A stretch of 64,000 nucleotides of DNA from Macrostomum lignano (taxonomy: Eukaryota), in NCBI GenBank assembly GCA_002269645.1, contig NIVC01000419.1:434001-498000 (forward strand), in the 5' to 3' direction. A program made the position numbers and the translations under genes. Under the pieces are notes generated by a model, which saw only the letters and a list, made by a program, of their open reading frames with translations, searched no databases and had not been told where the DNA came from. How positions within the stretch are numbered: position 1 is the stretch's first letter; each line of letters opens with the position of its first letter. Positions 6,164 through 11,989 of the stretch are shown here, in pieces.

Positions 6164-9100
6164 ATGCACTTGCTTCTGCAGCTGCTGCTGCTGATCGAGC
6201 TCTCAGCTTCATCAGCTCAGCTGCCAGTTGCACAGATCTGCTCAGATTCTGGTCTGACCGCGTTTGACTCTCTGCTGGCGCCAAGCAGTGGAGTGCTGCA
6301 TCTGAACTTCAACCAGCTGCCCACTACACTGTATGGCCCGAATTCCACAGCGAACTGGCTGCTCCTCTTGTACAGCCCGTTTGGAGGCTACTCAGTTGAG
6401 TATGCCGCGCATTTTGCCAGCTTTGCCAGCAAGATTGCGGGTGAGTCTGCTTTCACTATGGTTTTTGTTGGCGCTTCATCTTTCACTCTCCTCATTAAAG
6501 CCCTGTTTGTCCCCACCAACACCTCACTCCTTCCCCACCACCTCACTCCTTCCCCACCACCTCACTCCTTCCCCACCACCTCACTCCTTCCCCACCAACC
6601 TCACTCCTTCCCCACCACCTCACTCCTTCCCCACCAACCTCACTCCTTCCCCACCACCTCACTCCTTCCCCACCACCTCACTCCTTCCCCACCAACCTCA
6701 CTCCTTCCCCACCACCTCACTCCTTCCCCACCACCTCACTCCTTCCCCACCACCTCACTCCTTCCCCACCACCTCACTCCTTCACCACCACCTCACTCCT
6801 TCCCCACCACCTCACTCCTTCCCCCACCACTTCATTCCTTCCCCACCACCTCACTCCTTCCCCACCACTTCATTCCTTCTCCATCACCTCACTCCTTCCC
6901 CCACTTCCTCACTCCTTCCCAACCACCTCACTCCTTCCCCACCAACCTCACTCATTCCACACCACCTCACTCCTTCCACACCACCTCACTCCTTCCCCCA
7001 CCACTTCATTCCTTCCCCACCACCTCACTCCTTCCCCTCTACTTCATTCCTTCCCCACCACCTCACTCCTTCCCCCACCACTTCATTCCTTCCCCACCAC
7101 CTCACTCCTTCCCCACCACTTCATTCCTTCTCCATCACCTCACTCCTTCCCCCACTTCCTCACTCCTTCCCAACCACCTCACTCCTTCCCCACCAACCTC
7201 ACTCCTTCCACACCACCTCACTCCTTCCACACCACCTCACTCCTTCCCCCACCACTTCATTCCTTCCCCACCACCTCACTCCTTCCCCCTCCACTTCATT
7301 CCTTCCCCTCCACTTCATTCCTTCCCAACCACCTCACTCCTTCCCCCACCACTTCATTCCTTTCCCACCACCTCACTCCTTCCACACCACCTCACTCCTT
7401 CCCCCACCACTTCATTCCTTCCCCACCACCTCACTCCTTCCCCCTCCACTTCATTCCTTCCCCACCACCTCACTCCTTCCACACCACCTCACTCCTTCCC
7501 CCACCACTTCATTCCTTCCCCACCACCTCACTCCTTCCACACCACCTCACTCCTTCCCCCACCACTTCATTCCTTCCCCACCACCTCACTCCTTCCCCCT
7601 CCACTTCATTCCTTCCCCACCACCTCACTCCTTCCCCCTCCACTTCATTCCTTCTCCATCACCTCACTCCTTCCCCCACTTCCTCACTCCTTCCCCACCA
7701 CCTCACTCCTTCCCCACCACCTCACTCCTTCCCCACCACCTCACTCCTTCCCCACCACCTCACTCCTTCCCCATCCACTTCATTCCTTCCCAACCACCTC
7801 ACTCCTTCCCAACCACCTCACTCCTTCCCCACCACCTCACTCCTTCCCCATCCACTTCATTCCTTCCCAACCACCTCACTCCATCCCCACCACCTCACTC
7901 CTTCCCCCTCCACCTCACTCCATCCCCACCACCTCACTCCTTCCCCACCACCTCACTCCTTCCACCCCACTTCATTCCTTCCCAACCACCTCACTCCTTC
8001 CCCCTCCACTTCATTACTTCCCCTCCACTTCATTCCTTCCCAACCACCTCACTCCTTCCCAACCAACCTCACTCCTTCCCCACCACCTCACTCCTTCCCC
8101 CACCACTTCATTCCTTCCCCACCACCTCACTCCTTCCCCACCACTTCATTCCTTCTCCATCACCTCACTCCTTCCCCCACTTCCTCACTCCTTCCCAACC
8201 ACCTCACTCCTTCCACACCACCTCACTCCTTCCACACCACCTCACTCCTTCCCCCACCACTTCATTCCTTCCCCACCACCTCACTCCTTCCCCTCTACTT
8301 CATTCCTTCCCCACCACCTCACTCCTTCCCCCACCACTTCATTCCTTCCCCTCCACTTCATTCCTTCCCAACCACCTCACTCCTTCCCCCTCCACTTCAT
8401 TCCTTCCCCTCCACTTCATTCCTTCCCAACCACCTCACTCCTTCCCTATCCACTTCATTCCTTCCCAACCACCTCACTCCTTCCCAACCACCTCACTCCT
8501 TCCCCATCCACTTCATTCCTTCCCAACCACCTCACTCCATCCCCACCACCTCACTCCTTCCCCACCACCTCACTCCATCCCCACCACTTCATTCCTTCCC
8601 AACCACCTCACTCCATCCCCACCACCTCACTCCTTCCCCCACCACTTCATTCCTTTCCCACCACCTCACTCCTTCCCCCACCACCTCATTGCAGCTAAAT
8701 AATCGTCTATTTGTTGACTCAGTAGATAGAAATCGAAATTCTAAATTTTCTGAAAGCTGCATAGTCTTAGTACTGGGGCACACAGAAGCGTATGTATAAA
8801 TACCAATTTGTGTGAATATCAGAAGTGGCTTTATTGTCAATTCAGTCAAAAGTGGCACAACAATAAAAAAGAAAGAAGCAAGATGAAGAAGTGCCCATTC
8901 ATTCAGCGCGTTTCTGGCTCTCATTAATTCCAAAACAATCATGCCTTCGCCTATCCAATGAGCTATAGCTTTTATCCCTAATAATTTTCGCCTCGAAGGG
9001 AAGATGGGGAAACCGGGCCTCATCTGCCCCCTCCAATCAATTCAATTTCCTGCATGAGAAAAAATGCTGCCACAGAACTCATTGTGTCAGAAATTTCCAT

Positions 9101-11989
9101 TGTTTTCCAAATTCTATTGCTAAAAAGTTTTTTACTCTCCAAACGTAAATTGTCCCGCAAAATTAAAAAAATAACCACAAATTTTATGATTTACCTTTTA
9201 TAGACATCTAAAAAGTTTCTGCTTACAATTCTGAGTGACAGACTTAACAGGGAAGTCTATAGCACAGTGACAGTGTCTTTAACAACAGCAGAGTGACAGT
9301 GTCTTTAACAACAGCAGAGTGACAGTGTCTTTAACAACAGCAGAGTGACAGTGTCTTTAACAACATCAGAGTGACAGTTTAACAACAGCAGAGTGACAGT
9401 GTCTTTAACAACAGCAGAGTGACAGTGTCTTTAACAACAGCAGAGTGACAGTGTCTTTAACAACATCAGAGTGACAGTTTAACAACAGCAGAGTGACAGT
9501 GTCTTTAACAACAGCAGAGTGACAGTTTAACAACAGCAGAGTGACAATGTCTTTAACAACAACAGAGTGACAGTGTCTTTAACAACAGCAGAGTGACAGT
9601 GTCTTTAACAACAGCAGAGTGACAGTGTCTTTAACAACAGCAGAGTGACAGTGTCTTTAACAACAGCAGAGTGACAGTTTAACAACAGCAGAGTGACAGT
9701 GTCTTTAACAACAGCAGAGTGACAGTTTAACAACATCAGAGTGACAGTTTAACAACATCAGAGTGACAGTGTCTTTAACAACAGCAGAGTGACAGTCTCG
9801 CAGTTTCGCACTGTATTTCCATGACAGTGTGGAGAGGCACCATAAAGCTCGCGGCAATGGACGCCAGCCGGCCAGAGAATCTCGCAGCTCTCCGCCGCTA
9901 CCAGCTGACCGGGCTGCCCAGTTTGCTATTCATCGCTCGCCAGACTCCCTGGCTTGCTGCTGCTCCTTCTAGAAGAAGAGCAGGTGCTGCACGCGAGCTG
10001 CCAATGCCGAGAGACCCCGATTACCTGGAAGACGAGCTGTTTGCTCAGCTGGAGAAACGGGTGCCGAAACTGAGACCGGTGAAGTCTGTGTGAGTTCTGG
10101 TTCTCTGCTTGCCTGAGATGGCTGCTTGTTTCTTTGCTCTCTCACCTCACTAATCGCTGGTCGCTTTAGCAGACTTTATCTTTTGCTGATAAATTAGATA
10201 TAGATAGATAGATAGATAGATAGATAGATAGATAGATAGATAGATAGATAGATAGATAGATAGATAGATAGATAGATAGATAGATAGATAGATAGATAGA
10301 TAGATAGATAGATAGATAGATAGATAGATAGATAGATAGATAGATAGATAAATAGATAGATAGATAGATAGATAGATAGATAGATAGATAGATAGATAGA
10401 TAGATAGATAGATAGATAGATAGATAGATAGATAGATAGATAGATAGATAGATAGATAGATAGATAGATAGATAGATAGATAGATAGATAGATAGATAGA
10501 TAGATAGATAGATAGATAGATAGATAGATAGATAGATAGATAGATAGATAGATAGATAGATAGATAGATAGATAGATAGATAGATAGATAGATAGATAGA
10601 TAGATAGATAGATAGATAGATAGATAGATAGATAGATAGATAGATAGATAGATAGATAGATAGATAGATTAATTGATTGATTGATTCATTGATTCATTGA
10701 TTGATTGATTGATTTACTGATACCCTTCTCCGCCGCAAATCAGCCACCGAGTCCTCCGCGTCCCCGGTGCCACGGAGCTGTTCTACCTGGAGGAACCCTC
10801 TGATAGCTTGCTGTCCCGCCGCGCGATCCTCAGCTGCCTGGAGGCCGCAGCGACCACCGCAGGTCGCAAGCTGTTCTCCAAAACTCGCATCGTTTGGCGC
10901 ATCAACGCCAATGTCGCGTCTGGCCGCGTCCGGCTCAGCCGCTACCGCCGTCCGCGCGGCCGACCTCGCGGCCCGTTCCGTCGCGACATCAACCTCCTGC
11001 AGGTGAACTCCAGCTCCGAGCTCGCCGCTCTAATCCGCTGCGCGCAGCCGCATCGGGATCGACACCGCGTCGCTGCTGCCACTCCCTGCGAGCTGGACGC
11101 CGCCGCCGAGCCGCCGACGCCCGGACAGTTGATCGCCGACGCGCGCCAGTATCTCCGTCGCGACATCGCCGCCTGCCTGGCCGCTAACGAGGAGGCCGAT
11201 GTTTTTTCGTCGACGGCGGCGACAGCAGCGGCGCTACTCGACTTTCTGCGCCTTCTGCGCAACGTGCTGCCATCTTTGACCGGCCAAGTAGTTGTGCTGG
11301 CGCGGCACCTCCTGCATCGGCATCAGCAGCAGCGGCCAGCGTCAGCGAAAGTCTGGCTCCGCCTGCTGGCTAACGGCGAACCCGAGCCGAGCGATGCGGG
11401 CGACGATGTCGACTGGCGCTGGCGGCTTCTGCTGTCGCTCAGCGTCGCTCGTCTGCGGGCCGAGGAAGGCCTGCCATCCGTGCTGGCGACTGCGCGGCGA
11501 CTCCAAGCCGCCTGCTCGACCTCGCTGACGTCCCTGACGCTACTGGCTGCAGCTCCGGAGTGGTCAGCAGCAACTCCAGCTGACGAGCTGCTGCTGCTGT
11601 GGCGGCTGCACAGCCTGTCCAGAGGCCGGGTGTTCCCGCCGCCCAGCCTGTGTCCGGGCTGCCGGCTTACCCTAGACATGGACATCGACGGCGACAAGGA
11701 CGACGTTTTGAGATTCCTGGTCGGGTGGTACGGACCGGCGCTGGGGTCGGAACGGATGACTTCGGTTGATCGGCGTCGGTCGGCGCTACCCCGGCTGCCA
11801 GAGCTGCCGACGAATGACAGCGGCGACGGAGGCTACGATGAAGAGGTGCCATGCCTGCTGAAGCTGCTGCGGTGGCTGAAGGGCAGCGGCGGCGGGGACT
11901 GGGCGCGGCTGGCTTTGCTGCTGGCTGCCGGCTGTGCCAGCGGAGCGACCCTGCTTTGCTGGCTGGGCGGCAGCTGCGATCGGCGCTGA
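6164..11989 (+). CDS. QSOX: QSOX-like (sulfhydryl oxidase-fold) membrane protein lacking catalytic cysteines, 594 aa, 3 exons
   Basis: Exons 6164-6440 (g|gtgagt), 9828-10089 (gt|gtgagt) and 10744-11989 join in frame (1785 nt). Signal peptide; Trx1-like NWLLLLYSPFGGYS...WRGTIKLAAMDAS...GLPSLLF; HRR-like DARQYLRRDI...LLDFLRLLRNVLP; ERV-like C-terminus FPPPSLCPGC...DVLRFLVGWYG; C-terminal hydrophobic helix. Matched by eye to remembered QSOX1 motifs. Confidence 0.78.
6520..8690. repeat. C/T-rich polypyrimidine minisatellite (CCACCTCACTCCTTCCCCA variants) in QSOX-like intron 1
   Basis: About 2.2 kb with essentially no G on the + strand; source of spurious ORFs 6164-8698 and 6333-8702. Confidence 0.96.
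9266..9796. repeat. 26-bp minisatellite GAGTGACAGTGTCTTTAACAACAGCA
   Basis: About 20 copies, some with a 4-bp deletion; ends just upstream of the exon 2 acceptor. Confidence 0.95.
10197..10715. repeat. (GATA)n microsatellite grading into (GATT)n
   Basis: Read directly; fills QSOX-like intron 2. Confidence 0.97.

Follow-up and report, generated by a model that had tools for sequence, protein, structure and literature searches.

Within a 64,000-nucleotide stretch of the Macrostomum lignano genome (GenBank assembly GCA_002269645.1, contig NIVC01000419.1, positions 434,001 to 498,000 of the forward strand; this whole stretch is the window, and its first letter is position 1), we examined a three-exon gene at 6164-11989 on the plus strand that encodes a member of the QSOX family lacking the residues on which QSOX catalysis depends. 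We favor, with moderate confidence, the interpretation that this is an expressed and selectively retained QSOX paralog that has become a pseudoenzyme, and that its product is probably a redox-dead binding or scaffold protein. The protein combines homology to an enzyme family with loss of residues essential for catalysis, two traits of a pseudoenzyme, a term for enzyme homologs that lack catalytic residues but are retained. QSOX proteins are defined by an N-terminal Trx domain and a C-terminal Erv domain (PMC3616962). In the QSOX relay, electrons pass from the substrate to the CxxC of the first Trx domain (Trx1), then to the Erv CxxC, to flavin adenine dinucleotide (FAD) and finally to O2 (PMC3616962). 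A further, C-terminal CxxC is unique to the QSOX subfamily of Erv proteins (PMC3616962).

Exons 6164-6440, 9828-10089 and 10744-11989 join to 1785 nt, made up of 594 codons and a TGA with no internal stop, and the spliced product matches PAA83456.1 (BOX15_Mlig032762g1, "hypothetical protein") from end to end with 100% identity, so the uninterrupted open reading frame (ORF) of 594 residues proposed in the first-pass annotation is confirmed. The UniRef entry of the same Macrostomum lignano protein, A0A267GBU3, is named "Thioredoxin domain-containing protein". The window and NIVC01000419.1 show 0 mismatches over 21,989 compared bases. Both introns have GT...AG borders, with gtgagt donors and acceptors ending in ...acag and ...tcag. 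The exon-3 frame is the only open one (1266 nt with 0 stops, compared to 7-22 stops in each of the other five frames), and in this GC-rich stretch the GC content of exon 3 is higher at third codon positions (0.77) than at second codon positions (0.55), which is coding-like. The GenBank gene models of this assembly derive from StringTie/TACO assemblies of RNA-seq reads and from a mapped de novo transcriptome (PMC5730564), and from such an RNA-seq-guided model we infer that the gene is transcribed and that the annotated splice junctions are used.

Exon 1 encodes aa 1-92 and one base of the next codon (donor GCG/gtgagt) and carries the start codon, the leader and the first half of Trx1. Exon 2 encodes aa 93-180, covering the second half of Trx1 and then the linker to the second Trx domain (Trx2), while exon 3 encodes aa 181-594 and the stop, with Trx2, the pseudo-Erv region, an Erv remnant, the distal CxxC, a tail and a transmembrane (TM) helix. 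Hydropathy supports both the signal peptide and the C-terminal TM segment that had been proposed. The leader is at aa 3-22 by this measure (the hydrophobic leader at 6164-6217 in exon 1 is aa 1-18), and the TM segment at aa 566-588 (11900-11968, Kyte-Doolittle mean 1.97) aligns with the TM segment of canonical QSOX and is followed by a short basic tail and the TGA at 11987-11989. This architecture suggests that the protein would enter the secretory pathway and be held by a type-I membrane anchor with a luminal or extracellular body.

We consider it firm that the protein belongs to the QSOX family by descent. Aligned with hhalign to 14 canonical metazoan QSOX proteins, it matches with 99.6% probability (E 5.8e-25) over aa 31-512, and the Erv remnant alone (aa 400-518) matches with 97.4% probability (E 1.5e-11) and stays in register with the Erv columns of QSOX. 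A phmmer search of the PDB matched the Trx1-Trx2 region of QSOX1 from mouse, rat and human, with E values between 8.5e-6 and 1e-4. The match to QSOX1 at E 8.5e-6 covers aa 47-221, and alignments to Trx1-Trx2 fragments reach aa 221-231. The C-terminal half alone matched nothing relevant in the PDB with single-sequence phmmer, so a profile was needed to see the Erv homology. In a Pfam scan no match was above threshold. The Thioredoxin, QSOX_Trx1, FAD_SOX and Evr1_Alr models do not score, and the sole match, to QSOX_pErv at aa 335-387, is sub-threshold (E 0.059). The QSOX profile match expected in the first-pass annotation is therefore found by hhalign but not by the Pfam Thioredoxin and Evr1_Alr models. 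When 1.84 billion cluster representatives were searched exhaustively with HMMER, there were 35 matches, of which the best two are the M. lignano proteins PAA81219 (E 8.4e-15, aligned over 7-510) and PAA85896 (E 4.3e-13), and after the M. lignano paralogs the list continues with generic QSOX and protein disulfide isomerase (PDI) Trx domains. Two word-indexed searches of a 5.8-billion-protein set, one with the single sequence and one with an alignment, found only the query's own cluster; these searches were probably swamped by words rich in Leu, Ala and Arg.

AlphaFold2 (AF2), when given a 19-sequence alignment, predicts Trx1 (aa 40-135) with a predicted local distance difference test score (pLDDT) of 70-84, Trx2 with 60-79 and the Erv helices with 58-79. 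The model has Trx2-like beta-alpha elements at aa 191-279, five helices in the Erv remnant (403-418, 426-436, 442-449, 458-473 and 498-509) and a C-terminal helix at 565-592, while the prediction without an alignment is unusable (pLDDT 35.6). As anticipated in the first-pass annotation, the predicted fold superposes best on QSOX1, although this comparison is partly circular: Foldseek ranks mouse and rat QSOX1, both full-length, at the top (E 5e-17), followed by an oxidoreductase fragment, and the psiErv-Erv fragment 3llk is matched with a template modeling score of 0.57. Considering these lines of evidence together, phmmer, hhalign and AF2 all indicate an N-terminal Trx-fold domain of the QSOX Trx1 type and a second, non-catalytic Trx domain (10745-11050, approximately aa 181-282), the latter being a metazoan feature and here only 11% identical to canonical QSOX in its region. 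The pseudo-Erv helical region (11117-11404, approximately aa 305-400) is placed by hhalign to the canonical psiErv columns, and the degenerate Erv-fold domain that follows it (11405-11740, aa 401-512) is placed by the alignments, hhalign, AF2 and the match to 3llk. The QSOX-specific C-terminal CxxC is present as C483-P-G-C486 (11651-11662) at invariant columns.

What a working QSOX requires, namely the Trx1 CxxC, the Erv CxxC, the FAD contacts and the backstop loops, is lost in whole or in part from this protein. We called motifs in MAFFT alignments with the 14 canonical QSOX proteins and the M. lignano paralogs, using the functional map in PMC3616962. The replacement of the Trx1 CGHC by GGYS (aa 74-77, 6383-6394 in exon 1) noted earlier is confirmed, with FGGYS at aa 73-77 in the WCGHC column, and there is no cysteine anywhere in aa 27-210. 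The Erv CxxC reads CSTS (C437-S-T-S440, 11513-11524), so the earlier statement that every catalytic cysteine pair had been removed is right in that the Trx1 and Erv pairs are both broken, but one Erv cysteine, C437, survives. The substitutions of LWVLFH by WRLLLS and of WSSHNRVN by WRLHSLSR were also read correctly: the W-x-x-x-H of helix alpha1 is W406...L410, and the H-N-x-x-N of helix alpha4 (11591-11629) is H469-S470...R473, with the His kept and S470 and R473 in place of both Asn. The His and Phe after the Erv CxxC are replaced by Ser and Leu. In QSOX, the FAD contacts are the Trp and His of alpha1, the His and Phe after the CxxC, and the His and two Asn of alpha4 (PMC3616962). The N-terminal loop contributes one more, basic, residue, and a basic/aromatic pair that precedes the C-terminal CxxC completes the list (PMC3616962). 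About 3 of these 10 flavin contacts are kept (W406, H469 and F477), and the other seven are substituted or deleted.

The Erv domain has also lost 16 residues at one place and 14 at another, both in frame, which the first-pass annotation overlooked. With the 16-residue deletion, after W404, the disulfide-bonded loop that begins Erv is gone; in QSOX, this loop makes up the first half of the "backstop" and contributes a basic residue contacting the FAD phosphates (PMC3616962). The 14-residue deletion, before F477, removes the stretch upstream of the basic/aromatic pair, the backstop's second half. Both coincide with conserved regions 3 and 6, which hold the backstop and the Arg and Lys that contact the FAD phosphates (PMC3616962), and both loops occur in the active M. 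lignano paralogs as well as in 14/14 canonical QSOX proteins.

Loss of the Trx1 structural disulfide was also considered as part of the inactivation, and we rejected it. The pair is indeed absent, as had been claimed (A105/L114), but this is not a loss peculiar to this gene: the active M. lignano paralogs carry V/S and M at these columns and also lack the CX6-8C disulfide, so its absence is a lineage trait. In the alignment, the paralogs P0003, P0038 and P0004 are without this disulfide (columns 151 and 160), while it is invariant in the 14 other metazoan QSOX proteins.

The residues that remain are as distinctive as those that are gone. The cis-Pro loop, previously reported as intact, is kept as G121-L122-P123 (9911-9919 in exon 2), as are the structural residues W94, P123, P172, W406 and W466. 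The retention of the distal CxxC, C483-P-G-C486, also holds. C437, C483 and C486 are the only 3 of the 10 conserved QSOX cysteines that are retained, and they are invariant across 19/19 aligned sequences. Of all 12-residue segments of the protein, the best conserved is aa 475-486, at the C-terminal CxxC, a motif that QSOX reportedly does not need for catalysis in vitro (PMC3616962). Overall, 34/64 near-invariant QSOX columns are changed in this protein (30/64 kept), compared to 29/128 changed (99/128 kept) in two active paralogs.

Under a null model of random substitutions on this coding sequence (300 replicates per divergence level), a premature stop appeared in 92% of replicates at 10% amino-acid divergence, in 299/300 at 35% and in 300/300 at 50%. 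Given that more than half of the formerly invariant positions have changed without any stop arising, and that none of the three indels that set the gene apart from the active paralogs shifts the frame, the ORF was probably under selection after catalysis was lost. An intact ORF after such change is very unlikely under neutral drift, and the simplest reading is that selection kept the ORF after the loss of catalysis. The neutral simulation thus supports the earlier argument that coordinated loss without stops points to retention.

The nearest relatives of this protein are M. lignano's own QSOX paralogs, at 29-31% identity. PAA81219 and PAA85896 have retained the W/H/N residues together with the CGHC and the Erv CxxC, and the Pfam Evr1_Alr model recognizes both proteins. 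Intron 1, which splits a codon after "...ASK..", is common to PAA81219 and PAA85896 in position and phase, and intron 2, after the "RP...." hexapeptide, is at the identical position in both; these are the first two introns of either paralog, and two shared intron positions indicate DNA-level paralogs. Both introns are shared across the active paralogs PAA81219, PAA51167 and PAA57102 (Mlig027511g2, Mlig008860g1/g2) and PAA85896 (Mlig004329g2). In a neighbor-joining tree, the window protein is sister to the two active paralog groups, which are 47% identical to each other, within a long-branched Macrostomum clade. It keeps a Trx2 segment lost by both active groups, which fits a split before those groups diverged from each other. 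In Tajima relative-rate tests with four outgroups, 7/8 comparisons to active paralogs were non-significant (e.g. 50 vs 44 unique changes), so the dead copy is not dramatically faster-evolving than its active relatives. Like the window protein, the active paralogs lack the Trx1 CX6-8C disulfide, are rich in Leu, Ala and Arg, and fall in the one neighbor-joining clade; unlike it, they have the backstop loops and the W/H/N FAD residues as well as an intact CGHC and Erv CxxC. PAA81219 also differs from the window gene in having an extra intron and no TM segment.

We made several observations on the paralogs themselves. The active M. lignano paralogs fail the Pfam QSOX_Trx1 and FAD_SOX models, and the whole Macrostomum QSOX clade is unusually divergent. 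The PAA85896 model (Mlig004329g2, "partial"; NIVC01000301.1, L004 6001-20182) spans 14 kb and contains the segment from alpha4 to the C-terminal CxxC twice, with its last block 10 kb downstream beside a second near-identical copy, and it appears to join two tandem gene copies. In PAA57102 (P0037, Mlig008860g1), the Erv CxxC is followed by an unrelated Pro/Ala/Gly-rich tail without alpha4 or the C-terminal CxxC, which may reflect a frameshift in this copy, an alternative 3' end or a mis-called one.

Based on these results, we propose that a QSOX gene was duplicated at the DNA level in the M. lignano lineage before the two active paralog groups split, and that this copy kept the chassis, i.e. 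the leader, Trx1, Trx2, the pseudo-Erv/Erv helical module, the C-terminal CxxC and the type-I membrane anchor, while every step of the electron relay was broken. With no Trx1 active-site thiol, the protein would take no electrons from substrates. The Erv site is without its resolving cysteine, and both backstop loops, which form the docking site for Trx1 on Erv, have been excised. A broken relay together with a missing docking element would mean no disulfide formation by the QSOX mechanism, and to judge from its residues the protein should be unable to run the QSOX relay. Oxidase activity, with O2 reduced to H2O2, is accordingly not predicted from the sequence. FAD is probably no longer bound, with about 3 of 10 contact positions kept. 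By analogy, the most likely role is binding or scaffolding by a redox-dead protein, within the secretory pathway or on the surface of the cell, and the protein may bind through the Trx-fold surface with the cis-Pro loop as redox-inactive PDI-family members do.

Another form of retention is conceivable, in which the protein is a separation-of-function QSOX: selection would keep the C-terminal CxxC, the lone C437, the Trx-fold surface and the anchor for a non-catalytic activity such as capture or regulation of partners through mixed disulfides. We think this quite unlikely, but if true it could explain why the C-terminal CxxC is conserved across QSOX enzymes as universally as both catalytic motifs, despite being dispensable in enzyme assays. 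A related possibility is that residual thiol chemistry persists, with C437 (in C-x-x-S) and/or the C-terminal CxxC acting as a mixed-disulfide trap or as a regulator of partners, e.g. of the Trx1 domains of the active paralogs, which coexist in the genome. The three cysteines concerned are the only conserved ones kept, they are invariant in the 19 sequences, and the surroundings of the C-terminal CxxC are the best-conserved stretch. In addition, the top fold entries 3t58 and 3t59 are, according to their PDB titles, mouse QSOX1 C76A/C455S, engineered by changing the second cysteine of both redox-active motifs so as to trap an interdomain disulfide, and the C455S Erv site of that mutant is in the same C-x-x-S state as the window protein. 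However, the backstop that places the Trx domain on the Erv site is deleted here, the C-terminal CxxC is dispensable for catalysis in vitro (PMC3616962), and retention of a single cysteine could be due to chance or structure, so we hold residual thiol chemistry to be distinctly improbable.

Several points weigh against a selectively retained, redox-dead binding protein, and many of them would fit its main rival, a dying duplicate in which constraint has been released, the ORF and its transcription are leftovers and the product is functionless. No ortholog outside M. lignano turned up among 15 billion proteins or in JGI metagenomes, which keeps the case for long-term constraint indirect, and the gene is so far known from this single species. 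The identifiers Mlig032762 and Mlig026156 and those of the paralogs do not occur in the literature and supplements that we searched. Leu, Ala and Arg together make up 41% of the protein, a biased composition, and predicted structure is poor in mid-protein, with pLDDT of 34-69 in the pseudo-Erv region and low values in the linkers as well. The AF2 alignment was made of QSOX sequences, so that the Foldseek evidence is supportive but in part circular, and neither catalytic domain is recognized by the Pfam models. The presumed loss of FAD binding and the binding or scaffold role are both drawn from residues only. The M. lignano genome is highly redundant, with 180 Mb in blocks at least 95% identical (PMC5730564). 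Between this gene and its second genomic copy, described below, coding differences amount to 7 sites, of which 4 are synonymous and 3 non-synonymous; the ratio of non-synonymous to synonymous substitution rates (dN/dS) from copy to copy is not distinguishable from 1, and the sites are too few for a useful estimate. Substitution divergence between the copies does not differ significantly between coding and non-coding DNA (Fisher p = 0.2). On the other hand, a dying duplicate with 53% of its near-invariant columns changed should contain stops according to the neutral simulation, and there are none. Its three indels relative to the active paralogs would not all be expected in frame, and the two deletions are not randomly placed but hit exactly those loops that are coupled in function. 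The retention of W94, P123, P172, W406, W466 and the C-terminal CxxC, and a branch length comparable to those of the active paralogs, also speak against a gene in decay. We therefore disfavor the dying duplicate, mostly because of ORF retention and the targeted deletions, and regard it as unlikely.

It is also worth asking if the catalytic motif has been missed because of a faulty gene model, i.e. the true transcript has another or neighboring exon that restores the Trx CxxC, or the 594-aa ORF is mis-joined. A polypyrimidine-AG abuts the first codon, so an upstream exon or a spliced leader is possible, and another QSOX model of this assembly, PAA85896, looks chimeric. However, tblastn of the active paralogs and canonical QSOX proteins against the 64 kb matches the three exons only, and a six-frame motif scan of 4000-13000 found no CGHC-like Trx motif in any frame, so the alternative CGHC exon that had been raised as a possible objection is not in the window. 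The GGYS exon is colinear with the CGHC exon of the paralogs, which makes it the homologous exon and not an extra one. Furthermore, the same model was annotated independently at a second locus, and the exon borders match those of the paralogs. We consider an artefact of the gene model extremely improbable, and continue to favor a retained QSOX pseudoenzyme.

Directly 5' of the start codon, at 6146-6163, there is a polypyrimidine tract and AG (…tctgtttttaatccatag followed by ATG) that resembles a 3' splice acceptor. This stretch would fit either spliced-leader trans-splicing or an upstream non-coding exon. Spliced-leader trans-splicing affects 38.8% of genes in the M. lignano transcriptome assembly (PMC5730564). 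Intron 1 (6441-9827, 3387 nt) is filled by a 19-bp C/T-rich minisatellite at 6516-8688 and a 26-bp minisatellite at 9261-9796, while intron 2 (10090-10743, 654 nt) is mostly an (ATAG) array of about 117 units at 10200-10669. An 844-aa ORF at 6164-8698 on the plus strand uses the same ATG and reads from exon 1 through the stop-free minisatellite of intron 1, so an unspliced transcript would yield a long repeat tail rich in Pro, Ser, Thr and Leu.

A second copy of the gene, PAA70646.1 (Mlig026156g1, NIVC01001216.1), also has an intact ORF and differs at 3/594 residues (99.5% identical), none of them at the motifs; its exon 2 is 100% identical. In unique flanking and intronic DNA, 38/6085 sites differ between the copies with 12 gap openings, while the coding sequence has 0 gaps in 1785 nt. 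Intron 1 is 3387 nt in the window and 5417 nt in the second copy (L001 10278-15694), intron 2 is 654 nt and 458 nt (L001 15957-16414), and the two copies of the gene differ mainly in the length of the intron repeats; the unique parts of the introns are 99-100% identical. The upstream neighbor at both loci is an ABCC-type ABC transporter, the 3' end of which is at 1-1567 on the plus strand of the window (the ORF at 244-852 has an ABC_tran match), and the downstream neighbor at both loci is a Kelch/BACK gene on the opposite strand (14278-19819 on the minus strand of the window). From the same order of three genes at both loci, this is a duplicated syntenic block. The assembly is redundant owing to a recent karyotype duplication, with 180 Mb in blocks at least 95% identical (PMC5730564), so this pair of copies says little about long-term constraint.

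Across the whole window, the density of minisatellites and microsatellites is very high, with 44 Tandem Repeats Finder rows scoring at least 200. Examples are the arrays at 4496-5687, 30840-32018, 35514-36988, 45787-47002, 51893-52503 and 54831-56908, of which the last two are formed by one 30-bp unit and lie 2.3 kb apart. Long ORFs within tandem arrays are artefacts, as in the (AGTC)n ORF at 30763-31509, which gives spurious Pfam matches. Four ORFs outside the arrays, at 32548-33270, 37311-37991, 38100-38864 and 58247-58996 on the plus strand (226-254 aa), have no Pfam match and are either exons of unannotated genes or chance ORFs. An Rfam scan of the window gave no matches.

Compared to metazoan QSOX1 and QSOX2 (3t58, 3t59, 4p2l, 3q6o and 3llk), the window protein has the same domain order from leader to TM anchor, and it shares with them the cis-Pro loop, the Trp of alpha1 and alpha4, the alpha4 His, the aromatic residue before the CxxC and the C-terminal CxxC. 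Unlike them, it has neither redox-active CxxC motif intact, lacks the Trx1 CX6-8C disulfide, has lost the two backstop halves to deletions, and carries other residues in place of the alpha1 His, of the His and Phe that follow the CxxC, and of the two alpha4 Asn. A 2013 survey of the family describes QSOX enzymes as keeping all three CxxC motifs throughout, with no mention of an inactive member (PMC3616962), and our full-text literature searches found no report of a QSOX homolog without both catalytic motifs.

Part of this degeneration has a precedent within QSOX itself. The pseudo-Erv region is an Erv-fold bundle without FAD binding or active-site cysteines that is retained as a structural partner (PMC3616962), and the second Erv domain of the window protein appears to have gone the same way. 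The difference is that pseudo-Erv is an ancient and universal part of an active enzyme, whereas in the window protein degeneration has hit the catalytic Erv domain, so far in one species. Redox-inactive members of the PDI family, such as ERp27, ERp29 and PDILT, are Trx-fold proteins of the secretory pathway that have no functional CxxC and bind rather than catalyze, and PDILT (5xf7) and ERp44 entries are among the weaker Foldseek matches of our protein. Unlike the window protein, these PDI-family members have no Erv module and no C-terminal CxxC, have a different architecture and are not its closest relatives. The likeness would be an analogy in mode of action only, to a predicted binding function. 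Since redox-dead Trx-fold domains and degenerate Erv domains are both already known, this gene is not a new category of system. What it adds is that a QSOX chassis can outlive its own chemistry, and the pattern of loss is informative: the substrate-facing thiols, the FAD-proximal resolving cysteine, most of the flavin contacts and both docking loops, the first of them used solely for interdomain electron transfer, are gone together, while the enigmatic C-terminal CxxC that sets QSOX apart from other Erv proteins is the best preserved, which makes its role testable by comparison.

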